Sequence record: MZ779063.1 | Strand: one strand, 5' to 3' | DNA: 64,000 nt | In this document: positions 11,901 to 62,073 of the stretch, piece by piece | How the letters are laid out: each line of letters begins with the position of its first letter | How positions within the stretch are numbered: position 1 is the first letter of the stretch | The notes under the pieces: generated by a model | Told to the model about the DNA's origin: nothing | The model's input: the letters and a program-made list of their open reading frames with translations, nothing else | Databases searched by the model: none | Program-made: the position numbers and the translations under genes

Positions 11901-14900
11901 GTTATTTTAGAAGTGTATTTATATCTAAATTTTTTATTACCAACATTAGTTATTGTATCGCTACCAATAGACATACCTGGATCTACTACACTATCATATA
12001 TTCTGAAAACATCTCCACGTTCCATTTGTAAGTCAAATGATATAGAAATTTCATCTCCGACTTTTACTTTATTCAATAACTCATCAATATAAATTCTCCA
12101 TAAATATTGATAAGATCCATTTGAATTATCTTCAAAGCCTTTATTCCAAGATAAACTGTTTTCTAATAAGTTTCTTGCACCAATCTGTATATTATTAATA
12201 TTTTCATTAACTCTATTTTCTACTGCAGTAACTTGTGATGTAATTTGATTTGGTAATTGTTGGATACTAGAAGTATTAGCAGCAATTTTACCATCCATCT
12301 CATCTTGTTTACTAACAATACTAGTAATCTTATCAGTTTCTACTTTTAATTCACTGTATTGATTTGTAGTTTTAGTATCTAATGTCGTAATAGAAGAAGC
12401 GTTAAGTGTAATATCTTTCTCAGTTTGAGTTATACGAGTTTCATTTTTAGCAAATCTACTTCTATAATCTTCTGGCGATACGTCCCAAGAAGAAGCCACA
12501 TTACCTTCTTCTAATTGAATATGACCTACATAAGTATCCTTAGTTGTATTATCAGCAGTAAACTGAATTTTAAGGAAATTATTAGTTTTAGAATTGAATC
12601 TCAACTCATAACGAGTAGGAGTTGTTGTCAATGTCTTAGCAGATTCAGTCATAGTAATAAGATAATCTTTAGGAGAAACTTCAGTAGTTAAACTTGAAGC
12701 TTTCGTAATAGGTGTTTTAATTACTGGAGACGCAGCTGCTGAATAAGCATCATAGCTTAATACATAATTCGTATTAGGTTTAACTGCAACTATTTGAGAC
12801 ACTTCAGATAAATTTGTTCTAGTATTAGCATAAGTTATACTATTATTAACTTTTTTAGTAATGCTAGCTAAGAAAGGTAAATCAAATTTTTCAGTTCCAG
12901 CAAGCATGTTCTTAGTACCAATTTTAACTTTTCCCGATATAGCTTCAGTACTAGTCTCAGTTGTTACTCTTTGATCTATTCTACCAATTTCAGCAGTAAT
13001 ATTTGTATTTAAATTTGATACAGTTTCATTAACGCTAGTTTTAGTGGCATAATCTTTAGAAATATCTTGTTTAATAGAATCAGCTGTAGTAGTAATGCTA
13101 GCCTGTAAAGTTTGTTTAGTGTCATTAATAGCAGATTGTCTATCTGTAACTTCTTGAGTTATTTTATCATTAGCTACTTTTAATTCACCAGTTAAATCAC
13201 TGATATTGCCTTCATTTTTAGTAACTTTATCAGCAGTAATAGTATAGCTATCATTAAGTTGGGTTACTTTAGTTGACAAATCAGAATAATTTTCATCACT
13301 TCTATCTATTCTAGAAACTAATGATGTGATATTATCAGTGGCTACTTTTAAACTACCTTCTAAATTAGTGACATTTTCTTGAGTGACTTTTTGTTCTTCA
13401 GAAATAGCTTTAATTTCTCCAGCAACTGTTTCTAATCTAGATGATATATCTCTGACAACTTTATCATCTAAATCTTCTATTTTCTTAGATACTTCTTGAC
13501 GAATCATATCTACTGTTTGACTGACTTCAGAGAAACCTTCGACTACCTGTTTACGATAATCATCCATTTCTTTTTTAGTCATCATAGTGGCTACTAATTC
13601 ATTAGTGTCAATTACAGTTTTCTTAACAGATTCTAATCCAGTGACATCGTACATTTCTAAATTAGTAACCCAGAATTTAGGTTCATCAGAACCATCTTCA
13701 AATTCTGTTACATCTGAATCTTCAGATTGGTTTACCTTAAAGTATAATGTCATATAGAAAGCACCGTATAAGAAACCATTAGTACCTCTAACATTTTCTT
13801 TAGTAATTAAACCTTGACGGTGATACCAACCATTAAATTCTTCAGGATCGTCATCTTCTTCTGTATTAGGAATATCTTCATCTTTAATTAAAGACCATTC
13901 AACATTACTATCAGTGAATGTTCCTGAAACTTTAGTTCCGGCAGGGAAACCTCCATCTTCAGAATCGTAATTAATTAAATCAAAAGGTCTATTTAAATAG
14001 ATACAATTGTTTTCTCTATCAATAGCTCCAAAATCCCAACCGTTCATGAATACATTTCTAGAATAAGTTGATTCTCCATAATTATAACCATCATTACTCT
14101 TGAAATTCCAAATAACTAATGAATGATTATCATTATAATCTACTAAATTAGGATTAATATTTTTATTAACTATTCCTGCATTTGATACATTATAATTATT
14201 AGTCATATTCTTAATAGCTTCTTCTTCATCTACCGGAGTTGAATTAGTTTCAACTGGTTCTTCAGATTCAGACATAGGGAGATCAGGTTCTGTAGTTTTA
14301 TCTTCTTCAGGAGTATCATCTGCATATATTACACTATCTTCTTCTTCATCAGGTAATGCATTAGGATCATCTATAGAAAGAATATCATCTGCATCACTAG
14401 GTAATATAACTGATCCATCTCTATCGTAATCATAAACAGGAGTATCATCTTCTTCATCTAACGGTGCAGATTGGAATCTATAAGTGTCATCAAGACCATC
14501 AAGACTCTTGAAATAAATAACTTTATCCCCTTGTCTTAATTCTTGAGCTAATTCAATTACAGGTTTCTCACTACCCATTACATGTTGTGATTCTATTAAT
14601 TGTCCGTCTTTATCATAACTTAAATGACCTATAGAAGAAGGAAGAGAATTATTATTCTTCATAAACATAGAAAGTTTGTATGTTTTCTCTGGATTAATTG
14701 GTATTAATCTTTCAGAAGAAACAGTATTGTTAAATCCTTCCATTCTAAATGAAGCTGCAGATTGGAAAGCGTCTGAATTATCGTAATACATTCCAGGAAA
14801 GTTTGATTCATCTCCTTGATCTGCATTACCATTAAAAATTAAGTTATCTCCACGAGAATCCATATAGTAATTAAATTCTTGTTGTGATACTTCTAATTCT

Positions 14901-16912: not shown

Positions 16913-16942
16913 ATTTAATTCACCATCCTTTCATTTAATTGA

Positions 16943-16954
16943 TATTAATGTGTT
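16943..16954 (-). promoter_or_regulatory. AR9-type late promoter motif
   Basis: AACA CATTAA TA, 30 nt upstream of the giant tail fibre start. Confidence 0.6.
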
Positions 16955-16966
16955 CCATGTCAATAA

Positions 16967-17389
16967 TTAATAGTCTTCTAATTGTTCAGCTAGCGTATCA
17001 ATAATAGCAGCTTTTTTCCCTGATAGTTGAGTTTCCATATTATCAATAATATTTAATAAAATAGATTTATCTCTAACAGTAATAACTGCTTTTTCTTCAT
17101 CAATAGCTAATATATCTTCTTTAGCATTTGGGAATTCACTTACATTAAGAATAATACTTTCTGGATCTTTAGGGTCTTTAACAATATTACCATTTTCATC
17201 TTTTTTAGAAAATTCGTCAACCATATCTTTTCTATCTTTAGCATATTCTTCATAAGATTCTTTAAGTTGATTAATGAATTTAGTTCTATGTCTAGATTTA
17301 TTACCATTAAGTGGAATATTGAATAACACATCATATACAGTTTGTAAATCTTCATTTTTAATTGTAACTTGTTCAATTGTTTCTACCAT
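16967..17389 (-). CDS. DUF1617-like phage tail-module protein
   Basis: LFNIPLNGNKSRHRTKFINQL ... KDENGNIV resembles DUF1617 proteins of Firmicute siphophage tail modules; SD AAGGAG. Confidence 0.65.
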   Translation of the reverse strand: MVETIEQVTIKNEDLQTVYDVLFNIPLNGNKSRHRTKFINQLKESYEEYAKDRKDMVDEFSKKDENGNIVKDPKDPESIILNVSEFPNAKEDILAIDEEKAVITVRDKSILLNIIDNMETQLSGKKAAIIDTLAEQLEDY

Positions 17390-17506
17390 TTTTAGAAAAC
17401 TCCTTTTAAATTGATATTTATAATATAAATTAAGTTATTATGGCATTTTAAAAAATTACTCAACATTTTATTTATTATGAAACTAATAGAAAGTGGGTAG
17501 AAATAT

Positions 17507-18769
17507 ATGCCTCATTTAGGAAAAGAAAATGGTTATTCCATGTGTACTGCATCACCTTCATTATCTAGTGTTATATCAGGTGTACAATCATTCATGTGGA
17601 CATATTTTAAATCAATGTTCCCTAGTAATTTTTTTGCTTCAACTTATGTAAATACTTCTCTTAATTCAAATTCACTAAAAGATATGAAGGAACGTAAAAA
17701 AGGTTTTCCTCATTTATCAATGAATACACAATTTGAATTGGGTGATGGTTTTATGTCAGGTTTACCTATGTGGCATAAGACTGATAGATTTGTAATGAAA
17801 AATCTTAAAAGAAATTATAGATTGATATTTGAAGACGATACAAGAGGAATTAGAATATATACAGTTCCTCAAAGATATAAGATAGTATTTAATTACGGTA
17901 TACTATTACAAACAGAAATGGGAGCTTGGAACGTTCTTAATCACATTAATCAAACGTTTGAAAATGGTGGATATAATTATGCTAATGAAATAAGAATACC
18001 AACAAAATTACCAGAAATATTTATTGTTAATATATGTAGAAAACTAGGTTTAGATATTAATAACAATAAAGATAGAATGCAATTAAATGATTATATGATG
18101 ACAAATGGTTTAGGTCCAATTACTAATAAAAAAGATTTGTCTACTGGTAAAGAAAAGTATACTTATGATTATACTACTAATATATTATTAAATTATCCTG
18201 ATTTAACTAATTATGAAAAAGAAGTAACTAATCTAATAAATAAATCAGCTTCAGTTAGATATGCGATATCTGCTGAATTATGGGTACCTGGTAGTTATAT
18301 ATTAGAAATTGAAGATGATTTCAATATTCAAAGAGAAATTGATTCACTTTCAGATGATGTTTTACAATTCGACATTGCTATTTTACAAGATATGATTCCT
18401 AAGGAAAATGAAAGAGGAATGAAATTATTATTAGAAAGAAACTTTAATACTGAAATGAATGTTAAATTTGATTCAACTCAGATTGAAGAAATATTAGATA
18501 AAGATGTTATAAATTCAATTAAAGAACTTAATAAGATTAATGGGGACATTCAAAAAATCGTAGAATTCAAATTGTTTAAAAATAATAAACCTATGAGTAA
18601 AGATGAATATTTCGTTGATTATGATACATTTGAATTAATTGTAAAAGAACCTGAAGATAATAAGGTTCACACACTTGTAATGTATGCGGATACACGTAAG
18701 ATTAATATGATAAATGAATTAATAAATCAAGGAAGAAAAAAAGATTTATACAAAATGGACATATTTTAG
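17507..18769 (+). CDS. Virion structural protein, candidate tail-completion (T4 gp15-like)
   Basis: 420-aa ORF; VPQRYKIVFNYGILLQTEMGAWNVLNHINQTF is loosely similar to tail terminator folds. The function is tentative. Confidence 0.5.
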   Translation: MPHLGKENGYSMCTASPSLSSVISGVQSFMWTYFKSMFPSNFFASTYVNTSLNSNSLKDMKERKKGFPHLSMNTQFELGDGFMSGLPMWHKTDRFVMKNLKRNYRLIFEDDTRGIRIYTVPQRYKIVFNYGILLQTEMGAWNVLNHINQTFENGGYNYANEIRIPTKLPEIFIVNICRKLGLDINNNKDRMQLNDYMMTNGLGPITNKKDLSTGKEKYTYDYTTNILLNYPDLTNYEKEVTNLINKSASVRYAISAELWVPGSYILEIEDDFNIQREIDSLSDDVLQFDIAILQDMIPKENERGMKLLLERNFNTEMNVKFDSTQIEEILDKDVINSIKELNKINGDIQKIVEFKLFKNNKPMSKDEYFVDYDTFELIVKEPEDNKVHTLVMYADTRKINMINELINQGRKKDLYKMDIF

Positions 18770-45531: not shown

Positions 45532-46338
45532 ATGATTTTACCAAGTAAAAATCAGCGTGTGTTTGATAATAACATCGCTAAGAACAAGTGGTTCTATAAT
45601 GGACATATGAATCTTCAAACTCTTGAGTTTGATCCATTCGTAACTGGTTATTCATTCATAGTATGGACTAAGATTCCTTCTTGGGTTGAAAAACAATTCC
45701 CTGGTTTTAAAGCTATGACTCAAAAGAACTTTAAATCATTCCAAGGTTTAGAAAACATTGAAATGACTACAAACGATTATATGCATACGTTTAACGGTAA
45801 TAACTATCGTACAGCTGCTAGTATTACAAAAGGAAACACTGGTTTCCAAATGACTCACCAAGAATTCTCTGGTAGTCCAATTAAAAATATGTATCAATAC
45901 TGGGTATCTGGTATCCGTGATCCTCGTACTGGTATTGCAACTTATCCTAAAATTCATAATTTAGAATATGCTGCTAAAAACCATACAGGTGAATTATTAT
46001 ATATTCAAACTCGTCCAGATGCTAATAATACATCTAAAAATAATATTGAATTCGCTGCTTATTACACTGCAGTAATGCCTACTCGTATTTCTCTTGATCA
46101 CCATAACTACACTATGGAAACTCATGAAGAAGCACAAATTGAGCAAGACTTTGCAGGTAATATGGAAATTTCAGCACGTGTAAATGACTTTGCTAAGTCT
46201 AAACTTAATGAAATTTACAGCTTCACTGAACAAGGTATGTTTGATCCATCTGCACCTAAAACTGCTGGAGATAACTTATCTGATTTCGACTATAATAAAG
46301 GTGGAATCACTGGTTCAGGTAACGGAGATCTTAAATAA
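45532..46338 (+). CDS. Tail tube protein
   Basis: Position after the sheath; FDPFVTGY, EFSGSPI and YWVSGIRDPRTG; high-expression codon bias. Confidence 0.75.
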   Translation: MILPSKNQRVFDNNIAKNKWFYNGHMNLQTLEFDPFVTGYSFIVWTKIPSWVEKQFPGFKAMTQKNFKSFQGLENIEMTTNDYMHTFNGNNYRTAASITKGNTGFQMTHQEFSGSPIKNMYQYWVSGIRDPRTGIATYPKIHNLEYAAKNHTGELLYIQTRPDANNTSKNNIEFAAYYTAVMPTRISLDHHNYTMETHEEAQIEQDFAGNMEISARVNDFAKSKLNEIYSFTEQGMFDPSAPKTAGDNLSDFDYNKGGITGSGNGDLK

Positions 46339-48596: not shown

Positions 48597-50057
48597 TTAT
48601 GATAATGCACTTCCAATAGCACTGTTAGGATGAGGGTTTGCTTGAGATTTATAACCGTAAATAGTATCATCTATTTGTTGTTTAAATACTCTTCCTTTTA
48701 ACACTTGCATACTTCTTGAATACTGATTTTGCATATTAATTTGAGCTTTATCTATAATTGATAGTTGATCTCTTCTAATACCTGCTAAACAATCAATATA
48801 AGAAATTAAACCTGTATTAAATTTCATACGTTGGAATGATTTTGATGCCATTAAGTTAGGGTACATATCTCTTACATTTAGTGAAACTGTTATTTCTCTA
48901 GGGAAACCATCTGCTGTCCATGTACCTTCTTCTCCACGAACTATATTCATTGATGTTATAATACCTGTATGACATTCAAATCTACCAGGACAGTTTGCTC
49001 TAACAATGAATGGTTGTTTATATGAGAAAATAGAATCTTGTAAAGGTAAAGCTAATACCAATAATGACATGAACGGTAAATATACATTTTCAAAAATAGA
49101 TTGAGGATCTCCATACGCACTATAGAATTTAAATTCTAAGTTATAAGTACGGTCAAAAGTTGAGTTCATCCATACATCAGGATAATACATTGATGCTCCA
49201 TCTAAATTTTCCATAAAGTTACCAACTATACCACCTAATACTGGCATATTTGCAACCATATCATTAATGCTATCTTTAATAGATCTTGTAATTTTACCTA
49301 AAATAGAAGCTCCTCCAATACGAGCCATTTCTTTTTCTTCACGTATTTCTTGGTTTTTATTATTAATCTGAGAAGCTATATCAGATTGATTATACTCATG
49401 CATTGCTGATTCAGATACACTAGTAGCTTTATCCGCATAATAAGCTAAACCATAGTTTTTGTCATCTAAAGATCCACCTAAATCAAATGATCCTTTTAAT
49501 CCCATAGATGCATGTAATTGACTTCCCATGGTTTGTACGTATTTATAATATTCACTCATTTTAGGTTCAAAACTAACCATACGTCCATCTTTAGTATTAC
49601 CTATACCAACTAATCCAGCTGTAGTATTTGCCAATCTATCTAAACCTTCTCCAAAACTCCATAATTTACCTTCACCCGGTTTACCAAATAGTTTACCGTT
49701 CAATTTAGGCATACCTGGCATTATAAATACTAAAGGTAAGTCTAATTCAAATGTTCTTTTATATATTCTTCTATTAGGGTCATCTAAACTAGAGTAGTAC
49801 ATAGGCATTCCAAATACATCTAGTTCACCTTTAACATTTCTCAATTTAGTTTTATCGGAAGCACCATATTCAGAAATATTACGAGTATTACCTGTAGCAT
49901 CTTTAAATACACCTAAATCATTCTGACTTGGATCATATTCTTGGAAATCATAATCACCTTTAGTTTCATCAGGTTTAGGTATTAAAGCAATATCGTCATC
50001 ACTAATATCTAAAGGTTTCGTACTACCTTTTTCATTTTTATCTTTTTCTTCTGCCAA
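48597..50057 (-). CDS. Baseplate hub / tail-tube initiator-like virion protein
   Basis: YPDVWMNSTFDRTYNLEFKF...PFIVRANCPG...GIITSMNIVRG...GFPREITVSLNVRD resembles T4 gp48/gp54-like tube-cap folds; directly after the tape measures. Confidence 0.55.
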   Translation of the reverse strand: MAEEKDKNEKGSTKPLDISDDDIALIPKPDETKGDYDFQEYDPSQNDLGVFKDATGNTRNISEYGASDKTKLRNVKGELDVFGMPMYYSSLDDPNRRIYKRTFELDLPLVFIMPGMPKLNGKLFGKPGEGKLWSFGEGLDRLANTTAGLVGIGNTKDGRMVSFEPKMSEYYKYVQTMGSQLHASMGLKGSFDLGGSLDDKNYGLAYYADKATSVSESAMHEYNQSDIASQINNKNQEIREEKEMARIGGASILGKITRSIKDSINDMVANMPVLGGIVGNFMENLDGASMYYPDVWMNSTFDRTYNLEFKFYSAYGDPQSIFENVYLPFMSLLVLALPLQDSIFSYKQPFIVRANCPGRFECHTGIITSMNIVRGEEGTWTADGFPREITVSLNVRDMYPNLMASKSFQRMKFNTGLISYIDCLAGIRRDQLSIIDKAQINMQNQYSRSMQVLKGRVFKQQIDDTIYGYKSQANPHPNSAIGSALS

Positions 50058-50188: not shown

Positions 50189-53100
50189 TTATTTACCTGA
50201 AAATACTGGTATAGCAGATCTCACGTCAATATTGAATTGATCTCCATAAGCTCTATTAATAGCTTCTTGAAGATCAGAATCTCCTTGTGAAGGTCCATTA
50301 TTATTACCTGGATTGATAATAATAGTACTTCCGTTTCCATTATTACCACCTGTACCAGGATTATATGGATCATTAGGATTAACAATGACATTACCATTAT
50401 TATTACCATTATTGCCATTAGCTCCATTGTTTCCATTTTGTCCATTATTTCCAGTATTGCCGTTGCTACCATTATTTCCATTTGCACCGTTAATAATATC
50501 TGGATTATTTTGTAAATTATCTTTAATGATTCTATCAATTTCTTTATTAATTTCTTTGATAATTACATTACCTTTAGAATCAACTAAGTCACCTTTATTA
50601 TTGATAGTCGTGTTATTAAAGATATTATCACCTTTATTAATAGTAGTGTTATTACCTTTAAATGACATTTTTCTAAGTTGATCTAACATCTTAGCTGTAT
50701 TTTTATCAATATTACTTGTATGCTTAGTAATTTCATCTAAATCCATACGTTTTTGCTTATCAACTTTCATAGGTCCATTTTTGTAAGATACTGTAGAATT
50801 GTTATAATTATTGGTAATATTATAAATATTTCTTACAGTATTATTATCGCCTTGAATTGTTTGATGAGTAGTAGAATTGTTGGTTGTAGTTCCTGGTGAA
50901 GTATAGTTATTATTAACTATAGTAGAATTAGTATTTCCACCATTATTAATTACAGTACTTCCGCCAGAAGAACTTCCTGATCCTTGTTGTTGAGATTGAT
51001 TTGGCATTGATGAAGATGACCCATCTTGACCATTTGCACCAGATTGACCATCAGAACCACTAGATCCTGATGAACCTGAAGAACCAGAGTCTCCTGATTC
51101 CCCATCTTCTCCATCAGACCCTGATGAACCTGATTCAGATTTCTTCTTACCAGCTTCAGATTTAAGCTTTTCTTGTTGTTCTTGGTCTATTTTTTTGGCT
51201 TCTTCGTAATCAATACCATATATTTGAGCGTAACGTTTCATTAAACGGTCATTTAATGCTTCTTGTTCTTCTTCATCCATACGGTTATCGTCACGTCCAG
51301 TAATGGATCCGTACCAAGTACCATTTTTGAAACTATATTCTGAAGCTCCTGGTGAATCTCCTGATTCTGAACTTTCATCACTTGAGCTTCCGCTATCAGA
51401 ACCTCCTTCACCATATCTCATATAACCATCAATTCCCCATTTAGGGTTTTTATATTTATTAGCACTGTTAATAACAACACCATCAACACCATTAGCCTCT
51501 ACTTGTTTACCTCCACCAATGTACATTGTAACGTGTTCTATATTATCACATAAAATAATGTCACCTGGTTTAAGGTCTTTGGGGCTTTTAGCTTTAATTT
51601 TCTTAAAAGGCGTATCTCCATTCCAGAATGAATGAGTAGTGGCGTTCTTATCCATATCTAAACCAGCTTTTACATAAGCTCTAGCTATCAAACTAGAACA
51701 GTCAAAAGAATTAGCTCCTTGTCTGTTAGGTTGTGAATATTTTGCACCAACCTGTTTCTTAGCCCATGCAACAGCTTTATCAATTTTGGCTTTTTGACTT
51801 CCGCCACCGCCACCGCCTCTTTGTATAGGTGGATTACCTTTAATTATTCCTGTTCTACGTGAGCTTTTGTTTTTTCCTGATGTAGATGAAACCATGTTAG
51901 AAAATTTACTAATATCATTTGTATCAGCTATAACTGAACCGGCCCCACCTCCGCCAGCTCCTCCACCTTTTTTCTTAGTAGATTTTTTATCAGAACCACT
52001 GAATTTTTTGATAAAAGCATTACCAGAAGAAATACGTGACCCTAAAGCAGGAACACCGGCTCTTTCATATTTACTTACCCAAGAAGCAGCTGCTTGTTCT
52101 ACTGTTTTAGTAGTTTTAAGGTGAGATAAGGCAGCACTTTCTGATCCACTTAATTCTTTCCATAAATAATCCAATTGTAAGTCTAAATCAGACCATTTTT
52201 TACCTTTTTCTTTAGCATATTTCATTAAACCTTGTCTACGAGTATTATCCCATTGAGCAATACCAATACCATAACCAGAAATAGCACTATTAGCTTTTGC
52301 TTCATCAAATTTGGCATCTCCTTGAACACGATCAGCTTTCATTCCAGATTCATGTGCAAAGTTACCTAAAACACCAGCAACTTGTTCATTAGAAAGTCCT
52401 TTATCTTTAAGGAAATTCCAAATTTTCTCTGCACCTTCACCTTCAATTCCAGCTGCATCACTTCCTGAAGATGATGCTGAACTTGATGAAGATGATCCAG
52501 ATCCGGCCATAAATCCAGCCATGATATCATTCATCATACCGCCTAATTTATCGAACCAATCACCAATAGTATTAACTACTTCTCCTCCTGGTTCATTTAT
52601 ATCTAGTTTAGATTTTTTCTTTTTCTTCTTACTTAATAAAGAATAGAAAGGTGACATACGCATCATAGTCTCTGCTAATTTCTTAGGTGTTTTCTTAAGT
52701 TTACTCATGAGATTTTTAGGCATTAATTTATTCATTTGATGACCAATTCTACCCATTACAGATAATGGAGAATCTTTCATAGCTCCATCTACATCTTTCT
52801 TGATAGAATCTCTAGTTTTTCCTGCTGACTCTTCTACTTGTTTTTTAGCATCTTTACTAGCTTTATCTGACATGCCTTGCATTTCTGCTATTTCTTTTTT
52901 AGCTCTATCAGATGCTTCGCCTTCAATTCCTTCTTGATATGAACTTAATTCTTCTTTACTAGCTTCAGTCATTTCTTTACTCATATTTCCCATTTCTTCT
53001 TCATGACTAGAGAATTTATCTTTTAACCATCCCCAACCAGATTTAATTAATCCAGTTCCTCCTTGAAGAAGCATAGAAGTCATACCAGTTAAATTACTTA

Positions 53101-56077
53101 AGCCTTTACCAGCTAATGCCAAAGGAGCCATCAATAACATAGAAGCTCCGCCAACAACTTTTTTAATCAATCCTCCAAAGCCACTTGATTTTTCTTCCAT
53201 AGCCATATCAGTTTGATCTCCAAAGCTTTTAGCCATACCTGTAGTTTTCTGAACCATATTCATACCTAAACCAAATGCCGGTTTTACAATTGATTTATAT
53301 AATCCCATTCCAGCTAATCCCAATAAAGGAGTAGAAGCTAATAATGGATTATCTTTAATAAAACCACCTATAATTGAAGATTTATCTAAAGAACCATTCA
53401 TTTTAGTATCAACTGAAGGATCAACTGCAAAATTTTCTCCACCAGGTTGAGTTGAATCTAATTTTTCTTGTTCTTTTTTAGTCTTAGAAGGGTGATCATT
53501 GAATCCAATAATACTACCTAATGTCTTAATTGGGTGTTTTAAAGATTCAATAGGGTTGGCTATAGTTCTAATAATGTCTGGGCCAGCTAATGCTAATGAT
53601 GCAATTTGTCCAACTACAGGAATAGCATTTACACCAACACGAGCACCTACTTTAGCTCCTGCTTTAAGTAATCCTTTACCTATAGCTTTTTTAGCACCTT
53701 TTCCAGCAGCCATTTTAGCAGCTCTAGCTTTAAGTTTCCCTTTAAGTCTACTACCTGCACCGGCCATTAAAGCACCACCGGCAGCAAATTTACCAGTTAA
53801 AGAACCACCCATACTAGTTATTTTACCACCTAATTTAGTATTAGATAATTTACCTATTTTTTCTTTAACAAGGTCTTTACCTTTATTTTTATATTTATCA
53901 AATTTTTCTTTGACATGTTTATTACTATCAATAAGATCTTGAACGTCTCCTACTTTATCTGCAAAATCTTTATCATCTGAAGTGTCAGAAGCTTTCGTTT
54001 GTCCATTTTCTAAAGTTTGTTCATTAGGAATAATAGTAGATCTATTATCCTCATCATTAATATTATCATTTCTTCTTGTACTATCAGATTGTCTACTTTG
54101 ATTTGGACTAGAAGATGTTGTAGAAGTATTTTTATTTAAAGTTTGTTCTCTAGGATCTATTTCTCTAGAAACATTTTCATTAGGTTGATTTACATCACTA
54201 ATTATACCACTTGAATTTTTATCACTAGAATTACTACTATATCTTTGTTCAGGTATTTTATTATTTATTCTAGATACAATTTGTTTAATTTCACTTATAT
54301 CTTTATTAACGATATTAAAGCTAATATTATCATATACTGTATCTTTATTAGTGCTAAGAATACCGCTTCTATTTTCATTATTTAATTTAGAAGTAATATT
54401 TTTAGAAATACCTTTTCTTTGATTTTCATCATTAAGAGCATTTATAGAACTACTAGATAATCTCTTCTTAATATCTTTAGATTCTTTATTTAATTGCATT
54501 CTAGTTTTAGTTAAACTAGTTTTAGCTTCTTTATCATTAAATAATTTATCTAGAAGAATATTAAATGGATCATTAGGATCATTTGATTTAATTTGATCAA
54601 GTTCATTGCTTTTATTAATATTTTTAGAAATGATTTCTTTAATCTTAGATGTAGCTTTATTTTTATTATCTTCATTACTGAAAAGATCAATACCCATTTC
54701 AGAAGCTATATTTTCAAATTCTTTAGTAAAACTAGATTCTTTGATAGTTTTATTAACTTTTTCTTCTATATCATCTTTAATAGACTTGGAAGTTTTAAAT
54801 GAACCTGAATCATAGTCATAATGAATTTCTTGTCCATCTTCTGAAGTTAAACCAACTATTTTAGATAGATAACCAGGTATAACTGTATTAAGCGTATTAT
54901 GAGTTTCCACATCAAAAGCAACTTTTTGATGTCTGTCTTTTCTGTTAGCAGTTGATATACCACCAGTTACACTATCAAATATTTTGTCAATTAATTTACT
55001 TTTACCTGATTTAACATCTTCAAGAAGATCATCTCTTCTTTTATCTCTTTTTCTTTGTTTATCACCATTATCATTATCACTAAAAGGACTAAATTTCTTA
55101 TTAGCAAATTTACCAACAGCTTTTTCTATGAAAGTATTTTCATTATTAAGAAAATCAAAAGCTTTACCTTTAGCTACATCAACTAAACCTAAACTTTTAA
55201 TACCTTGTTTTTTAGAACCAATAACTTCTTTAAGTAATTCAGTTCCTTGTTTTTTAATAAAGTCTTTAGCTTTATCTTTGAATCCTTCTTCTTGAGATCC
55301 TTCTAATATACTTGATAAAGTTATATTAGATAAGAATAGATCTTCTAATGAATTACTATTTTTAATTTCAGATATATTCTTAATTTTAGTATTCTGTCTA
55401 ATAGCATTACTAGTTTGAATTAAACCATTTAAGTTTTGGAACATACTTTCTCTAATACTATCGTTAGCTTCTCTCATTAAATTAAGATTATCAATCATAG
55501 AAGTAAATCCGGTAGTATTTATTTGAGAAAGATTAGATACAGAAGAAGTTAATAGAGCTGTAGATTTAGCAGAAGAACCACCATCATTAATAACTGTTGT
55601 AGAAGATACTATTTTAGATTTATTATCATCTTCTTCATCAAAGTCATCAAATTCAAAATCTCCATCTAAAGAATCATCTGTGTCAGAATCCATATCTGAA
55701 AAACTATCATCAAAACCAAAATCTTCAAAATCACCACCGATATCCATACCCATGTTATTGAAGTCTTTTAGTGATCCTTTATCTTGGATAGTTTCTCCAG
55801 TTTTAAAGGTATTTTTAGTAGATTCTAAAGCTTCTTTAGATAAATCTTTAGTAGATTCACTTATCTTTTGTAATTGTTTTTTCTTTTTATTCTTTAATTC
55901 TTTGACAGCTTTTAATGGATTATTTTGATCCATCATACGTTTCATGTCATTAGACTTCATTTTATTTAAATTTTTGTTAAATTCAATATCTATATATTTT
56001 CTAGAAGATTTAGAGGAGGAGTTATTTCTAAACTCCTTCTCTATCTTGCTAGTGTTAAATTTCTTATCTCTAGCCAA
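50189..56077 (-). CDS. Tape-measure-like virion protein A with phage-tail lysozyme and NlpC/P60 domains
   Basis: IWNFLKDKGLSNEQVAGVLGNFAHESG...GIAQW (Phage_lysozyme2, ~52000-52440); FDCSSL...PGDII..EHVTMY (NlpC/P60, ~51410-51795); FDVETH..VIPGYL conserved block. Confidence 0.85.
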   Translation of the reverse strand: MARDKKFNTSKIEKEFRNNSSSKSSRKYIDIEFNKNLNKMKSNDMKRMMDQNNPLKAVKELKNKKKKQLQKISESTKDLSKEALESTKNTFKTGETIQDKGSLKDFNNMGMDIGGDFEDFGFDDSFSDMDSDTDDSLDGDFEFDDFDEEDDNKSKIVSSTTVINDGGSSAKSTALLTSSVSNLSQINTTGFTSMIDNLNLMREANDSIRESMFQNLNGLIQTSNAIRQNTKIKNISEIKNSNSLEDLFLSNITLSSILEGSQEEGFKDKAKDFIKKQGTELLKEVIGSKKQGIKSLGLVDVAKGKAFDFLNNENTFIEKAVGKFANKKFSPFSDNDNGDKQRKRDKRRDDLLEDVKSGKSKLIDKIFDSVTGGISTANRKDRHQKVAFDVETHNTLNTVIPGYLSKIVGLTSEDGQEIHYDYDSGSFKTSKSIKDDIEEKVNKTIKESSFTKEFENIASEMGIDLFSNEDNKNKATSKIKEIISKNINKSNELDQIKSNDPNDPFNILLDKLFNDKEAKTSLTKTRMQLNKESKDIKKRLSSSSINALNDENQRKGISKNITSKLNNENRSGILSTNKDTVYDNISFNIVNKDISEIKQIVSRINNKIPEQRYSSNSSDKNSSGIISDVNQPNENVSREIDPREQTLNKNTSTTSSSPNQSRQSDSTRRNDNINDEDNRSTIIPNEQTLENGQTKASDTSDDKDFADKVGDVQDLIDSNKHVKEKFDKYKNKGKDLVKEKIGKLSNTKLGGKITSMGGSLTGKFAAGGALMAGAGSRLKGKLKARAAKMAAGKGAKKAIGKGLLKAGAKVGARVGVNAIPVVGQIASLALAGPDIIRTIANPIESLKHPIKTLGSIIGFNDHPSKTKKEQEKLDSTQPGGENFAVDPSVDTKMNGSLDKSSIIGGFIKDNPLLASTPLLGLAGMGLYKSIVKPAFGLGMNMVQKTTGMAKSFGDQTDMAMEEKSSGFGGLIKKVVGGASMLLMAPLALAGKGLSNLTGMTSMLLQGGTGLIKSGWGWLKDKFSSHEEEMGNMSKEMTEASKEELSSYQEGIEGEASDRAKKEIAEMQGMSDKASKDAKKQVEESAGKTRDSIKKDVDGAMKDSPLSVMGRIGHQMNKLMPKNLMSKLKKTPKKLAETMMRMSPFYSLLSKKKKKKSKLDINEPGGEVVNTIGDWFDKLGGMMNDIMAGFMAGSGSSSSSSASSSGSDAAGIEGEGAEKIWNFLKDKGLSNEQVAGVLGNFAHESGMKADRVQGDAKFDEAKANSAISGYGIGIAQWDNTRRQGLMKYAKEKGKKWSDLDLQLDYLWKELSGSESAALSHLKTTKTVEQAAASWVSKYERAGVPALGSRISSGNAFIKKFSGSDKKSTKKKGGGAGGGGAGSVIADTNDISKFSNMVSSTSGKNKSSRRTGIIKGNPPIQRGGGGGGSQKAKIDKAVAWAKKQVGAKYSQPNRQGANSFDCSSLIARAYVKAGLDMDKNATTHSFWNGDTPFKKIKAKSPKDLKPGDIILCDNIEHVTMYIGGGKQVEANGVDGVVINSANKYKNPKWGIDGYMRYGEGGSDSGSSSDESSESGDSPGASEYSFKNGTWYGSITGRDDNRMDEEEQEALNDRLMKRYAQIYGIDYEEAKKIDQEQQEKLKSEAGKKKSESGSSGSDGEDGESGDSGSSGSSGSSGSDGQSGANGQDGSSSSMPNQSQQQGSGSSSGGSTVINNGGNTNSTIVNNNYTSPGTTTNNSTTHQTIQGDNNTVRNIYNITNNYNNSTVSYKNGPMKVDKQKRMDLDEITKHTSNIDKNTAKMLDQLRKMSFKGNNTTINKGDNIFNNTTINNKGDLVDSKGNVIIKEINKEIDRIIKDNLQNNPDIINGANGNNGSNGNTGNNGQNGNNGANGNNGNNNGNVIVNPNDPYNPGTGGNNGNGSTIIINPGNNNGPSQGDSDLQEAINRAYGDQFNIDVRSAIPVFSGK
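51120..51352. repeat. 233-bp segment duplicated at 56597-56829
   Basis: Same length, no indels, 3 amino-acid differences in 78; most nucleotide differences are synonymous. Confidence 0.95.
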
Positions 56078-56100
56078 TTATTAGTTCCACCTCCTGCTAT

Positions 56101-59100
56101 CTATTTCAATTCTTCTAATAAACGGTCTAATTCTTTAGTAGATGCTAATGTATTTTTATCTATATTAGCTAACATTCTTACTAAATCATCTGAATACCAT
56201 AATTTTTCATAATCATAAGTATAACCAGAGTTACCATTTTCAATTTTAGAATTTTTATGATTGTTTACAATTTTATTATAATGGTTAGTTACTCGGTTTT
56301 TACCTTTTATAAATTCTTTATTCACATTTTCATTATTAATGACATTACTTTGTCCATTTTGATAATTGTTATTAACTGTTTTAGTATTTTTACTACCTTG
56401 ATTGTTAACAGCATTATTACCTCTATTAATATTAGAAAAACCACTATTAGCTAATGTTGGTAATTGGAATACCGGAGGATTTCCGATATTCTTATTATTA
56501 GTTATTTGAGATCTTGATTCTTGTGGTTTAGATGGCGATGCTGAAGAATCAGAACTATCTGAAGATTCTTCATCTCCAGAATCTTCACTTCCAGATCCTG
56601 ATGAACCTGATTCAGATTTCTTCTTACCGGCTTCAGATTTTTTCTTTTCTTGTTGTTCTTGATCGATCTTTTTAGCTTCTTCATAGTCAATACCGTATAT
56701 CTGAGCATAACGTTTCATTAATCTATCATTTAATTCTTCTTGCTCGTCTTCATCCATACGGTTATCATCACGACCAGTTATTGAACCATACCAAGTACCA
56801 TTTTTGAAACTATATTCTGAAGCTCCTGGACCTGATTCACTATTTCCTTCTTTATCATCTTCATCACTTTTAGAAGCAGAAGAACTAGATCCTCCTCCGC
56901 CAATAGTCTCTTTAATTGTACTTGCTAAAGCTTTCTTACCTTTACTATTCGGATGAACACCTAAACCATCATTTTCAATCATATCAGAACTGGCTTTACT
57001 ATTCCAGTCTATTACTTTTGAATCTGAACTTTCAATAGCTTTATTAGTTGCTTCAATAATATCAGAAATATCAGATCCTTTTCTCTTTTCAGGATCTACA
57101 TACGTATTAACAAAGTATACATCTGCTTTGTCATACATATCTTCTATTTCTTTAACATTACCTGTAGTTAATCCTCCATTAGTACCTAATTGCACTATAA
57201 TTGCATTTTTATCTTTATTGTATTTCTTTTTGTTGGATTCTAATACATTTTTACCATTAGGCGAAGGACCTCCACTTGAATAAGTTCTTGAAGGAACTGC
57301 ATTAATTTGAATTTTACTAACTGATTTTCTTATTTCAGAAGCAGCTCCTGCACCTATGGAGTCACCTACCATAAATACTTTATTGTAGGATTTACCTCCA
57401 CCGCCTCCACCAGTTACCGTTTTAGCTATTTTTCTAATGGCTTCAGGAGTATTACTGAATGGAAATCTATCTTTAATAAAATTATCAACTCGTTTTTTAA
57501 TCTTCTTAATATTGTATATATCTGAATTGTAAATCTTAGTTTTTTCTTTTTCTGCCTTTTCTTCAGTTTTCTTCTGATTATTTTCTAATTTATTTAAAAG
57601 AGCTCTATCATTTCTTACTTCTTTAGCTCTTTGTCTTTTAGCTTCTTTGACTTCTTGTGATTTATAACCACCGTCTACCATTTTTACAGTAGGATCAAAT
57701 GCAGCTCCACCTTTTTTACCTTTTTTAGATTTTCCAGCTTTACTACCTTTGTCTTCATCACTACCGCCTTTAGAACCTTTTAAAGGAGCTTTAATCCAAG
57801 GTGATGGATCTACAGAGTTTTTCTCCATAGCCCAACCGCCTGGTTTACCTTTATTTATTTGGAAGTGAAGGTGACCTGAACCAGCAGTATTAGCACCAGT
57901 GTTACCTGAGATTGCTATAACTTGTCCAATTTTAACTTTATCGCCCTTTTTAACTAATTGTTTAGTTAAATGCATATACGTACTATAGATGTTACCAGGT
58001 GATTTAACTTGAACAATATTACCTCCACCCGGATCGGTGTTTGATCTAATAACTGTACCTTCTACCATACATTTAACTTTTTGACCTGGAAGCATACCTA
58101 TATCAATACCATAGTGCTTTCCTCCGTTAAATGATAAACCAGAATAGTTACCATATGGTTGCCAAATCGCAGCACTTGGTATTTTTTTCATCCAAGCACC
58201 AACTGTGCCATCTGGTATTTGATTAATAGAACCAGGTACAATTTTCTTAGTATTCATATCTACTTCGCCAGCTTCACCTGAAACTTCAGGTTCACCGTCT
58301 CCACCAGAATCGCCACCACTGGAATTTTTCATTTTAGACATTGCAACAACCATTTCTTCCATTTTAACTAAGAAACGACTGAACCAATCTCCGATTTCTC
58401 CTTTACCATATTTAGAGAAATCAATTCCGCCTTTAGCTATTTGATACAAACTACCTAGAGGTGTACTCATGAACATATCTTTTTGAATATCTTCTTCAGC
58501 TTTTGGTCCTGATTTCATTTTATTATCAGTAATTGTTTTAAACATATCTCCACCAACTTTAGCTAGTGGGAACATAGGAGATGCTCTAAACATTAGTTTA
58601 GAAGTACTTAATATTAATCTACCTAAACCTGTTTGATCTTCAGTATGTTTTTCTTCTTTACTTTTAGCTTCATCTTCTATTTTATCACCAGGATGTTCAC
58701 CAATTCCGAAGAAACTACCTAATGTTTTAATAGGGTGTTTTAATGATTCAATAGGATGTTTAATAGTCTTGATAATATCAGGAGCCCACATTGCTGCACC
58801 AATTACTGGTCCAACAAATGGTATGAATGGTAATGCTGTTTTCAATCCTGCTTTTAATGCAAATTTTCCTCCAGCTTTCATTGCACCTTTACCGAATAAT
58901 TTATTTTTAGCTTTACCTATAGCACCAAAGGCTTTTCCTCCAAGTTTCTTAGCTCCACCAAATAAACCTTTACCGATAGATTTAGCTCTGTTAAAACCTT
59001 TAGAAGCAAATTTACTTATTCCTTTAGTTGCAGCTGAAGCATTCTTTTTATTAAATATTTTAGATATACCACTTTTAGCTACTTTCCCTATAGTTTTACC

Positions 59101-62073
59101 GGCACTTAATCCTTTTTTAACTAATCCTGCACCTTTACCTATAACCATTTTACCTAAAGATTTAACAGAAGGTAATTTATCTTTAGCAAATTTTCCAATA
59201 CCTTTAAATACATTACCTATTTTTTTAGGAGCACCTTTAATACCTCTAAATAATTTTCCTAATCCAAATTTTCCAGCTATATTTTTAATTCCGCCACCTA
59301 TTTTACCTAACATGCCAGGCATACTAGTAAAGAATTTACCTATTCCGCTTGGTAATAATTTAGATAATAATTTAGGTCCAAATTTAGCAGCTAAGAATCC
59401 TCCAGCACCCAACATTGCAGCGTTACCTAAGAATCCTCCAGCAGATGCTAAGAATCCTTTCTTACCAGGTTCTAGATCTTTTTTACCATTTTTACCTTTC
59501 ATTAATGAACCTAATACAGCTGCAGAAGTTCCAGCAAATAAAACTGGTCCCATTTTACTAAAATCAAGCATACCGTTCATCATTTTTTTAGCACCAATGG
59601 ATTTTTCAGCTTCTCCACCTTTTCCAAAGTTTATATTACCTCTAATGGATTCAGCAATTTCTTTTTTATTGGAACCTGTTATTTTAGACATAACATCTTC
59701 CCCAGATTTTCCTGCATCGGCAGTTGAAAGGCCTTGTTTCATTCTTTCTAAAGCTCCAGCATCTTGAGAATCTTCCATATCTTTTTTAATAGTTGGATCA
59801 TTGCCAAAAGCAGTTTTAACTAAATCGATTATTGTACTCTTAGCTTTCTTTTCTTTTTCCTCTCTAGTTAAATCATCTATTGTTTTGCTTGGTTCTTTAG
59901 TGTAAGTATCTTTATTAGCCTCATTATTATTAATTGATAATTTATTTAAACCAGGAATATTCTTCATTAAATCCATTAATGGATTATTATCTATAATACT
60001 AGATTGATTTATATTCTGATAAGGATATTCATCATCTTGATCTGGTTGAGTATTTTCTTGAGTTGAATTAACTCTACTAGATGCAGAAGAAACCATATCT
60101 TTAATAGCACTTGTAGGATTTTCTTTGTATTCTTTAGCTTTATTAACTGCATTAGAAAGACTATTTAATTTATCCATTACAGAAGCATGAGCTTCATTAC
60201 TTCCATTATTTCCACTTAGAATAGGGAAATTTTTACCTTTATCTATGATATTATTGATCGTATTAACTTTATTATTAATAAATTCTTTATTATTATTAAT
60301 ATTATCATTACTGAAATTATTGTCTAATTTTCTTTCTATTTCTAAGAAAATATTTTTAATTTCTTCTAAATCACTATTTTCCCAGTTAATATTACCAAAA
60401 TCTTTAATCTGATTAATATTATCATTATTATTAGATCTAGAATAAGTCGAATTAGATTTATTTAAACCTTCTATTTCAGTAAATGCCATTATTCTTGAAT
60501 TATCTTTTTTATCAAGTGTTTTTGAAATAGATTTCTTAATATTGAATAAATCAGTATTAAATTTAGCTGAATTCTTTTCAAACACTTCAGATAATGACTC
60601 AGTATTAACATTTATATTTTTCTGATTAACTATTTCTTTAAGTTTAGAAGTTTTTTGGATAGGTTTGTCTATTTTAGTTAATTCAGCTAAAACTTCTTTA
60701 GTTCTTTCTTCATCATTATCTAATTTAGATAATAATTCTTTACCTAAATAAGTATCTTTAAAATTAAATAAAGAATCTGATTTAATCTTATCCAAGTCTT
60801 TTTTCTTAGCCGAACCTCGATTTTCCCAAACGCCTTTTCGGTAATTATAGATACTACCTAATTCAGCATTATCTGCTAATCCGCCTGAACGACCTTCTTT
60901 TTTGGCTATCAAATTACCTTGAAGTCTAGATAAGAAGTCTGGTATAACTTTATTAATAGACGTATGAGATTCCATATCAAATTGAACAGGAGTATCTTTT
61001 TTACGTTTATTTTTTAGAGAAATACCGCCTTTACCATCACCTAATAACTCTTCTTTAAATTGATCTAATCTACCTGAAAGAGCATTTCCTAAATTAGATA
61101 TATACTTATTATCATTGCCAGTTAATCTTTCTAAACCTTTAGTAAGTTTACTATCTTCATCAAGATTTCTATTAATAAGCATAGAACCTATATTTTGTGG
61201 ATCAAATCTTTTATTCAATCTATTAAATATATTTTTATTATCGCCTTCAGGATCATAACCACCAATATCACCGTAAAGAAGTTTATTAAATGCAATTTTA
61301 GCTCCTTGAGTTGCAGCAAATTCAATAGGATTTTTAGCTACACCCATCAGCATTGATTTAAGTTGGTCTCCGGACATCATACCCATTAATAAATTTTCAG
61401 GATTAGTTTTCTCATCCAAATATTTTAATAAACTAATATTACCATTCAATATAGAATGTAATTTACTTTGTTTATTTCTTTTGGTATTTTCTTCCATTAT
61501 TGTATTTTGATATATACCATCCTGTATTGTACTTAAATTTGATAAAGCTGAATCTACGAGACTGTTAGTTGCTTGCATTGATAAAGAATAATTATTCAGT
61601 GCAATATTTGTTCCAACAAATCCTCTTTGATTTATCTCAGCTAAATTATTCATTGCTACTAGAGGTGAATTTGTTATTTTAGATTTCTTTTTATCTGATA
61701 AACTAACAATTTCAGATTTAGTCCCATCAGGATTATCAATATATTCTGTTACTGATTCATATTCAGGTTTTTCATTAGATAATTTTTCATTACTACTTGA
61801 AAAAAGATCATTTTCATTAGATTTATTTTTTAGTGTTTTTAATAAATCATTAGTAGAACCTTTAACTTCAGAAAATTTCTTTAATCTTCTTTCATCATTG
61901 TTGAATAATTTTAAACCTGAATCTCCCACTATAGCATCTAATGATGGATTAGATTTTATAAACGCATTAAAAAGAATACGACCAGTATTTTTAGAAGCAT
62001 TTTTAATGACAGTTGATTTATTATTATTTTCTAATTGTCTAATATTCTTTTTATTTCTATTATTTTTAGCCAA
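56101..62073 (-). CDS. Tape-measure-like virion protein B with M23 peptidase and SGNH (OatA-C-like) domains
   Basis: HYGID...YMHL...HLHF (M23, ~57800-58170); GDS...LGTNG...DW...DGLGVH (SGNH, ~56900-57390); FDMESH..VIPDFL block shared with protein A. Confidence 0.85.
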   Translation of the reverse strand: MAKNNRNKKNIRQLENNNKSTVIKNASKNTGRILFNAFIKSNPSLDAIVGDSGLKLFNNDERRLKKFSEVKGSTNDLLKTLKNKSNENDLFSSSNEKLSNEKPEYESVTEYIDNPDGTKSEIVSLSDKKKSKITNSPLVAMNNLAEINQRGFVGTNIALNNYSLSMQATNSLVDSALSNLSTIQDGIYQNTIMEENTKRNKQSKLHSILNGNISLLKYLDEKTNPENLLMGMMSGDQLKSMLMGVAKNPIEFAATQGAKIAFNKLLYGDIGGYDPEGDNKNIFNRLNKRFDPQNIGSMLINRNLDEDSKLTKGLERLTGNDNKYISNLGNALSGRLDQFKEELLGDGKGGISLKNKRKKDTPVQFDMESHTSINKVIPDFLSRLQGNLIAKKEGRSGGLADNAELGSIYNYRKGVWENRGSAKKKDLDKIKSDSLFNFKDTYLGKELLSKLDNDEERTKEVLAELTKIDKPIQKTSKLKEIVNQKNINVNTESLSEVFEKNSAKFNTDLFNIKKSISKTLDKKDNSRIMAFTEIEGLNKSNSTYSRSNNNDNINQIKDFGNINWENSDLEEIKNIFLEIERKLDNNFSNDNINNNKEFINNKVNTINNIIDKGKNFPILSGNNGSNEAHASVMDKLNSLSNAVNKAKEYKENPTSAIKDMVSSASSRVNSTQENTQPDQDDEYPYQNINQSSIIDNNPLMDLMKNIPGLNKLSINNNEANKDTYTKEPSKTIDDLTREEKEKKAKSTIIDLVKTAFGNDPTIKKDMEDSQDAGALERMKQGLSTADAGKSGEDVMSKITGSNKKEIAESIRGNINFGKGGEAEKSIGAKKMMNGMLDFSKMGPVLFAGTSAAVLGSLMKGKNGKKDLEPGKKGFLASAGGFLGNAAMLGAGGFLAAKFGPKLLSKLLPSGIGKFFTSMPGMLGKIGGGIKNIAGKFGLGKLFRGIKGAPKKIGNVFKGIGKFAKDKLPSVKSLGKMVIGKGAGLVKKGLSAGKTIGKVAKSGISKIFNKKNASAATKGISKFASKGFNRAKSIGKGLFGGAKKLGGKAFGAIGKAKNKLFGKGAMKAGGKFALKAGLKTALPFIPFVGPVIGAAMWAPDIIKTIKHPIESLKHPIKTLGSFFGIGEHPGDKIEDEAKSKEEKHTEDQTGLGRLILSTSKLMFRASPMFPLAKVGGDMFKTITDNKMKSGPKAEEDIQKDMFMSTPLGSLYQIAKGGIDFSKYGKGEIGDWFSRFLVKMEEMVVAMSKMKNSSGGDSGGDGEPEVSGEAGEVDMNTKKIVPGSINQIPDGTVGAWMKKIPSAAIWQPYGNYSGLSFNGGKHYGIDIGMLPGQKVKCMVEGTVIRSNTDPGGGNIVQVKSPGNIYSTYMHLTKQLVKKGDKVKIGQVIAISGNTGANTAGSGHLHFQINKGKPGGWAMEKNSVDPSPWIKAPLKGSKGGSDEDKGSKAGKSKKGKKGGAAFDPTVKMVDGGYKSQEVKEAKRQRAKEVRNDRALLNKLENNQKKTEEKAEKEKTKIYNSDIYNIKKIKKRVDNFIKDRFPFSNTPEAIRKIAKTVTGGGGGGKSYNKVFMVGDSIGAGAASEIRKSVSKIQINAVPSRTYSSGGPSPNGKNVLESNKKKYNKDKNAIIVQLGTNGGLTTGNVKEIEDMYDKADVYFVNTYVDPEKRKGSDISDIIEATNKAIESSDSKVIDWNSKASSDMIENDGLGVHPNSKGKKALASTIKETIGGGGSSSSASKSDEDDKEGNSESGPGASEYSFKNGTWYGSITGRDDNRMDEDEQEELNDRLMKRYAQIYGIDYEEAKKIDQEQQEKKKSEAGKKKSESGSSGSGSEDSGDEESSDSSDSSASPSKPQESRSQITNNKNIGNPPVFQLPTLANSGFSNINRGNNAVNNQGSKNTKTVNNNYQNGQSNVINNENVNKEFIKGKNRVTNHYNKIVNNHKNSKIENGNSGYTYDYEKLWYSDDLVRMLANIDKNTLASTKELDRLLEELK

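Follow-up and report, generated by a model that had tools for sequence, protein, structure and literature searches.

Two tandem, otherwise diverged giant genes in a 64,000-nucleotide stretch of sequence record MZ779063.1 (hereafter the window) each carry a copy of a 78-residue module that is kept near-invariant by selection on its amino-acid sequence and not on its DNA. The window is ~99.9% identical to the Staphylococcus jumbo myophage vB_SauM-UFV_DC4 (DC4; 263 kb, AR9/PBS1-like group), and DC4 stands for this genome in all comparisons between lineages. The two carriers, which we call A and B, are paralogs lying head to tail on the minus strand with a 23-nt spacer (56078-56100) between them; A (50189..56077, 1962 amino acids (aa), TTG start) encodes a giant tape-measure-like tail lysin and B (56101..62073, 1990 aa, TTG start) a giant tape-measure-like protein. 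The module occupies 51119..51352 in A (aa 1576-1653) and 56596..56829 in B (aa 1749-1826), both on the minus strand, and a profile built from all known copies found only these two in the window. In both proteins it follows the last enzyme domain, which is NlpC/P60 in A and of the SGNH type in B, and it is a small tethered protein element between an exchangeable hydrolase cassette and the C-terminal end.

The two copies are identical at 75 of 78 residues and differ at 26 of 234 nucleotides (89% nucleotide identity); counted by codon, 20 changes are purely synonymous and three are non-synonymous (E/D, A/E and L/K). Nucleotide similarity between A and B sets in sharply with the module's first codon and stops a few bases past the last one. 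Outside the module, parts of the two proteins can be aligned at 25-43% identity and other parts cannot be aligned, and a match like that of the module goes well beyond what chance would give. A first-pass annotation of the window had described a near-invariant 78-residue segment with three replacements and numerous silent changes in two diverged paralogs, placed just past the last enzyme domain and between Ser/Gly linkers, and all of this was borne out in both genes. The region it indicated was right, but its coordinates were shifted by 1 nt from those given above. A reading of the module coordinates on the plus strand was discarded, as it contained only stops; the coding strand is the minus strand.

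The module consists largely of a 52-residue core (EYSF...KKID; 51185..51340 in A and 56662..56817 in B, both minus strand) and a charged tail of ~22 residues (QEQQEKLKSEAGKKKSESGSSG in A; 51119..51184 in A and 56596..56661 in B, both minus strand). Among 20 copies, which make up 11 different protein sequences, no variation was seen at 46 of the 52 core positions, most charged helix residues included. When conservation was scored in 60-residue windows over four lineages, the module ranked first among the A orthologs (0.94) and second among the B orthologs (0.92), and the catalytic domains scored 0.5-0.7. The ratio of non-synonymous to synonymous substitution rates (dN/dS), a check that the first-pass annotation had proposed, was calculated by the Nei-Gojobori method. 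For A versus B of this genome it was 0.04 over the full module and 0.02 within the core, and between orthologs it was 0.00-0.05 for the core versus 0.1-0.7 in the four enzyme domains. Those orthologs in which silent sites were saturated still had a dN of 0-0.065 in the module, versus 0.1-0.64 in the enzyme domains. The A and B modules of phage LY01 (locus L011) were fully diverged at silent sites, and their proteins were still identical at 69 of 78 residues (57/62 over the first 62).

Silent divergence was calibrated against the biased codon usage, under which two independent codon draws for the same residues agree at ~59-63%. The A and B modules used the same codon at 52 of 72 positions, against 45.6 expected at saturation (z = 1.7). 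Gene-wide codon identity was 0.91 for DC4-S6, 0.78-0.80 for DC4-LY01, and 0.65-0.68 for DC4-SA1 and DC4-Machias. Clustering of the silent differences was suggestive only, with p = 0.017 for the leading 12 unchanged codons and p = 0.33 for the maximum run anywhere. Because the silent sites are near saturation, the constraint must act on the protein and not on the DNA, and recent gene conversion as the only cause of the similarity was ruled out by this calibration.

The module is a mini-domain on a tether of its own, and constraint extends over its entire surface. With shallow alignments, AlphaFold2 modelled YSFKNGTWY as a short beta-hairpin, with low confidence, and placed after it two helices that meet at YGID (predicted local distance difference test (pLDDT) score 75-87), so that the core is predicted to fold as an aromatic beta-hairpin and then a helical hairpin. 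The linkers on both flanks, which are acidic, rich in Ser and Gly and variable in length, were disordered in the models. In a model of the last 256 residues of B, order was confined to the module and the C-terminal helices, and the module did not pack on anything. Its first 62 residues (PGAS...QEK) are acidic, with a net charge of -6 or -7 and an isoelectric point (pI) of ~4.4-4.5 (-6 and 4.5 for the A copy), and the whole A and B proteins are basic (net +25 and +73, respectively). The distance from the module to a C-terminal helix containing NIDKNT (50696-50713 in A and 56149-56166 in B, both minus strand) is similar in the two proteins, 199-213 residues in A and 201-219 in B. An internal duplication of the C-terminal hairpin-plus-helix element was also considered and was ruled out (hhalign probability 0.2).

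A tblastn search of 50,697 phage records found the module in ten Staphylococcus jumbo phages only, always two per genome, and both paralogs of all 10 relatives carry it. Among 1.84 billion representative proteins, a profile search returned a single match, the 1973-aa tape measure protein of Staphylococcus phage Machias, and a word-indexed search of 5.8 billion proteins returned five clusters, namely the query's own and those of four named Staphylococcus jumbo phages. None was found in the IMG/VR and JGI metagenome contigs. Searches for a known family gave a best E of 0.084 in Pfam, which is below the cut-off, 0.002 in PHROGs, to a family of unknown function, and 0.1 among PDB sequences, and Foldseek returned nothing at E <= 0.001. 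The first-pass annotation had not recognised the family, and it had named a match to a known domain or absence from orthologs as findings that would speak against its claim; no family was matched, and all orthologs carry the module. The published accounts of these phages that were consulted note two possible tape measure proteins, without mention of the module. The module is a clade-restricted domain of no described family under unusually strong constraint, and not a new kind of biological system.

Outside the staphylococcal clade, the closest resemblance was seen in the Listeria phage LPJP1, whose tape-measure/lysin is apparently a single gene. The alignment runs collinearly from NlpC/P60 up to and including helix 1 of the module (E = 2e-15); the segment TEEEKKAIGDRINSKYAKEYGL, which follows NlpC/P60 and a linker, aligns with helix 1. 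The hairpin and helix 2 are missing, and LPJP1 has a partial counterpart only. Phage PBS1 has a single giant homologue, gp95, at the same locus, with a VgrG3-like muramidase domain and weak N-terminal homology (E = 9e-5), and there the module is wholly absent. As the gene is single-copy in both PBS1 and LPJP1, the A/B duplication is specific to the staphylococcal clade, and the presence of helix 1 after NlpC/P60 in LPJP1 indicates that at least part of the module predates the duplication and that A has the ancestral architecture. The C-terminal part of A comprises an Asn-rich region, the NIDKNT helix and collagen-like repeats; its last ~170 residues (50192-50700, minus strand), which B lacks, contain collagen-like GNNG repeats and a conserved end, FNIDVRSAIPVFSGK. 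The end of the LPJP1 protein (SITPILAGY) resembles that of A, and this similarity to the A-only extension supports A as the ancestral form. The LPJP1 gene (~10789-15882 of locus L012) is annotated in pieces, and stretches of ambiguous bases occur in it. The part with NlpC/P60 and helix 1 is separated from the collagen-like C-terminal part by an in-frame stop (15373-15375), which may be a sequencing artefact or a real split.

What does such a module do in two proteins with different cargo? That it is needed in identical form in both suggests that both must fit the same partner, and our tentative preference, which we regard as quite possible, is that it serves both proteins for docking or registration when the tail is assembled, by binding a common partner or the other paralog. 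According to this explanation, a single binding site would have to accept both paralogs in the course of assembly. This site would be offered by a partner common to both, located in the tube lumen or the baseplate hub, or by each paralog for the other; the neighbouring gp48-like tube initiator or a chaperone are candidate partners. The module would then let proteins with different enzyme cargo enter, and leave by, the same tail.

Several observations weigh against this explanation. A complex prediction with two A modules and one B module gave a median score of 0.03, which neither supports nor refutes binding; the monomer models were also modest in confidence (mean pLDDT 63 and 48). Neither A nor B was detected in the published virion proteomes of DC4 and SA1, and that they are virion proteins at all is inferred from the genes around them and from their domains. 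Their putative assignment as tape measures, in turn, comes from position, size and the matches of their enzyme domains to tape-measure PHROGs. B and A do lie in a tail-gene neighbourhood, directly upstream of the probable gp48-like gene. The PHROG tape-measure matches span the lysozyme and M23 domains only, outside of which no membership of a tape-measure family was found, and the N-terminal 1200 residues of A and B match no family. Published annotations call B a 'tape measure protein' and A a 'tail lysin' and note helical and transmembrane-like content in both; the tail of phage PALS2 has a length of 201 +/- 29 nm.

A more specific form of the docking explanation is that A and B co-occupy one tail as a heteromeric tape-measure bundle, the module being a registration or oligomerisation knot. 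We consider this unlikely, and we know of no heteromeric tape measure that has been described. If true, one injection would deliver a muramidase, an NlpC/P60 peptidase, an M23 glycyl-glycine peptidase and an O-acetyl esterase.

Staphylococcal jumbo phages are under consideration for therapy, and to our knowledge their tails are structurally uncharacterised. Besides a 15-residue island described below, the module is the one place where the diverged tail lysins must stay alike, and it seems the most promising handle on the loading of two tape-measure-like proteins into one tail and on what holds them there. It also bears on how swapped enzyme cassettes remain compatible with the assembly machinery. 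For engineering it marks a boundary, since the cargo upstream of the module appears exchangeable and the module itself does not.

Another possible interpretation is that the module is a wall-binding (targeting) module for a conserved staphylococcal wall ligand, common to both lysins because they act on one wall. In many lysins, a small domain of this kind lies on the C-terminal side of the catalytic domains. It does lie directly past the last catalytic domain in A and B, it is limited to phages of one host genus, and its hairpin, FKNGTWYGSITG, is rich in aromatic residues and resembles a single choline-binding or YG-type repeat. However, CW_binding_1 (PF01473) consists of tandem aromatic hairpin repeats of ~20 residues and the module has one hairpin, and no match to CW_binding_1, SH3b, LysM or any other wall-binding family was obtained even at E <= 10. 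The staphylococcal wall is anionic and the known staphylococcal binding domains are basic, whereas the core is strongly acidic (pI 4.4-4.5) and is flanked by acidic linkers. Invariance of almost all the surface charges would moreover be unusual for a domain with a ligand groove, and the module is absent from the phage endolysins, as follows from there being only two copies per genome. We therefore think that wall binding is improbable.

The module could also be a maturation element that serves, when A and B are cut by a protease in tail assembly, as the site recognised or as an intramolecular chaperone; cleavage would then part the enzyme-bearing portion from the C-terminal end. In other phages, processing of the tape measure protein takes place close to its C-terminus, the conversion of lambda gpH to H* and the cleavage of T5 pb2 being precedents. 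The position of the module between cargo and C-terminal end on flexible linkers would suit such a role, and both paralogs would require identical recognition. No protease motif was identified, however, the DC4 and SA1 virion proteomes contain no peptides of A or B in which processing could be seen, and a near-invariant core of 52 residues far exceeds the needs of a cleavage site. Processing is in our judgement distinctly unlikely as the reason for the module.

Recombination between the two copies was seen as well. In DC4, Machias and SA1, the A and B modules of one genome differ at 26, 32 and 47 nt, respectively, and orthologous modules of these three phages are further apart in most comparisons (41-59 nt). 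In a maximum-likelihood tree, the module copies were grouped by phage lineage and not by paralog, and an approximately unbiased (AU) test rejected monophyly of the A copies for the whole module (p = 0.003) and for the charged tail alone (codons 57-78, p = 0.001); the hypothesis of A monophyly was chosen after the distance table had been seen. The tail differs among lineages (KLKSEAGKKKSES vs ELKAKAGKEATES) but hardly differs between A and B within a genome, and its grouping by lineage indicates gene conversion. For the core alone, concerted evolution was not significant (AU p = 0.12).

As a control we used a second shared island of 15 residues, (N/H)PIESLKHPIKTLGS, which lies 2 kb upstream of the module (53513..53557 in A and 58714..58758 in B, both minus strand). 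It was invariant in 18 of 20 paralog copies; the pattern search missed those of Madawaska A and MarsHill A. The island comes after a Gly/Lys-rich hydrophobic region. The tree of this control region split A from B (support 100/100), which places the duplication before the divergence of the lineages and shows homogenisation to be confined to the module. The best reading of these data is intense purifying selection throughout the module with patchy gene conversion superimposed. The first-pass annotation had left the choice between purifying selection and an older conversion, and both occur, as seen from the low dN/dS at near-saturated silent sites and from the grouping of the module tree by lineage. 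What looked like a micro-conversion at the 3' edge in DC4 proved, once realigned, to be a 6-nt indel, and the variant pattern in PALS2_A, in a low-complexity stretch, is only a possible short conversion tract.

The enzyme cassettes upstream of the module have moved between phages. Between LY01 and DC4, nucleotide identity falls to 0.33-0.68 over B codons ~1241-1880 and A codons ~1161-1600, versus 0.91-0.98 in the flanking backbone, and the diverged segment has its 3' border at the module or close to it. The core of the LY01 B module carries the Machias-type residues R23 and K43. This mosaic indicates cassette exchange between phage lineages.

It could then be argued that the module is a functionless by-product of recombination, left by recent conversion or kept as a mere homology arm for cassette swapping; conversion does occur within it, it borders the exchanged cassette of LY01 on the 3' side, and the tract of homology has sharp borders. 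This is very hard to reconcile with silent sites near saturation and almost no replacements (dN/dS 0.02-0.04), with silent-saturated orthologs that retain the same protein sequence, or with the LY01 pair, whose proteins stay alike after complete silent divergence, and we give it little credence. Finally, a nucleotide-level element such as a regulatory RNA, an internal promoter or a recoding signal in both genes, which 89% identity over 234 nt amid dissimilar DNA might have suggested, can be practically dismissed, because this identity is what the shared residues and the AT-rich codon bias predict (45.6 identical codons expected, 52 seen), the differences fall almost solely at third positions, and the other reading frames are closed, being full of stops.

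The cargo itself differs between the paralogs. A has a phage tail lysozyme domain (PF18013; aa 1216-1359, 52001-52432) and the NlpC/P60 domain (aa 1455-1541, 51455-51715), and B has a peptidase M23 domain (aa 1319-1409, 57847-58119) and an OatA-like SGNH domain (aa ~1567-1724, 56902-57375), all on the minus strand. The last of these was below the cut-off for GDSL in Pfam (16.7 bits vs 23.6), and phmmer matched it to the 'Acetyltransferase' PDB entries 6WN9/6VJP (E = 5.7e-10), which we take to be SGNH-type C-terminal domains of the peptidoglycan O-acetyltransferase OatA; GDS, GTNG and D..GVH motifs are discernible. If B brings an O-acetyl esterase in the virion, S. aureus peptidoglycan that resists lysozyme could thereby become open to the lysozyme domain of A, and A and B would then jointly bear four complementary wall-degrading activities. 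The close spacing of the two genes and their TTG starts suggest, as far as can be read from the DNA, co-transcription and a deliberately weak translation initiation. In the relatives, no terminator is annotated between A and B.

Directly downstream of A lies a gene (48597..50057, minus strand) for a 486-aa virion protein, probably a baseplate tail-tube initiator or cap similar to T4 gp48. Its feature and structure neighbours include the T4 tail-tube-cap (gp48) families, and its homologues are found in phiKZ-like and PBS1-like jumbo phages and in Listeria LPJP1, some of them annotated as 'baseplate tail-tube protein'. Past an intervening open reading frame of 721 aa come the tail sheath and tube genes, with the tube protein encoded at 45532-46338. 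The gp48-like gene is intact here; the annotation of Machias (10251-13368 of locus L002) shows it interrupted by an intron-like insert with a gene for a TnpB/CasX-like 'transposase', and in PBS1 (15791-18186 of locus L013) the match is spread over open reading frames 96-98. The gene seems to be a hotspot of mobile insertions. Protein-atlas look-ups of the upstream 222-aa and 305-aa genes as tail chaperones gave nothing informative. Elsewhere in the window, a 2662-aa open reading frame (8924-16912, minus strand) has no Pfam match; it may correspond to the very long 'tail fiber' genes that are on record in phage SA1.

A and B resemble T5 pb2, the tape measure protein and tail lysin of the phage K/Twort type and the mycobacteriophage tape measure proteins in being giant, largely helical or hydrophobic proteins with peptidoglycan hydrolase domains. 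Mycobacteriophage tape measure proteins also have small conserved motifs. The enzyme domains of A and B match tape-measure PHROGs and the tape-measure or tail-lysin genes of Twort and K, and the gene neighbourhood is that of muralytic tape measure proteins, with tube-initiator, tube and sheath genes adjoining. Unlike T5 pb2 and the K and Twort proteins, which are encoded by one gene, there are two tandem paralogs here, their N-terminal 1200 residues belong to no family, and the module has no counterpart in those proteins. Also comparable are PBS1 gp95 ('lysis domain, VgrG-like' in the AR9 group) and the single tape-measure lysin of LPJP1, which occupy the same site upstream of the gp48-like gene and have the same overall architecture; both differ in being single-copy, and the module is absent from the former and reduced to the helix-1 motif in the latter. 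The conserved boxes of T-even tail fibres provide a further parallel, because there, too, a short segment common to paralogs is homogenised within a genome and borders swapped cassettes. In contrast to those boxes, conservation here is enforced on the protein while silent sites are saturated, which argues that recombination is secondary and not the reason for the existence of the segment.

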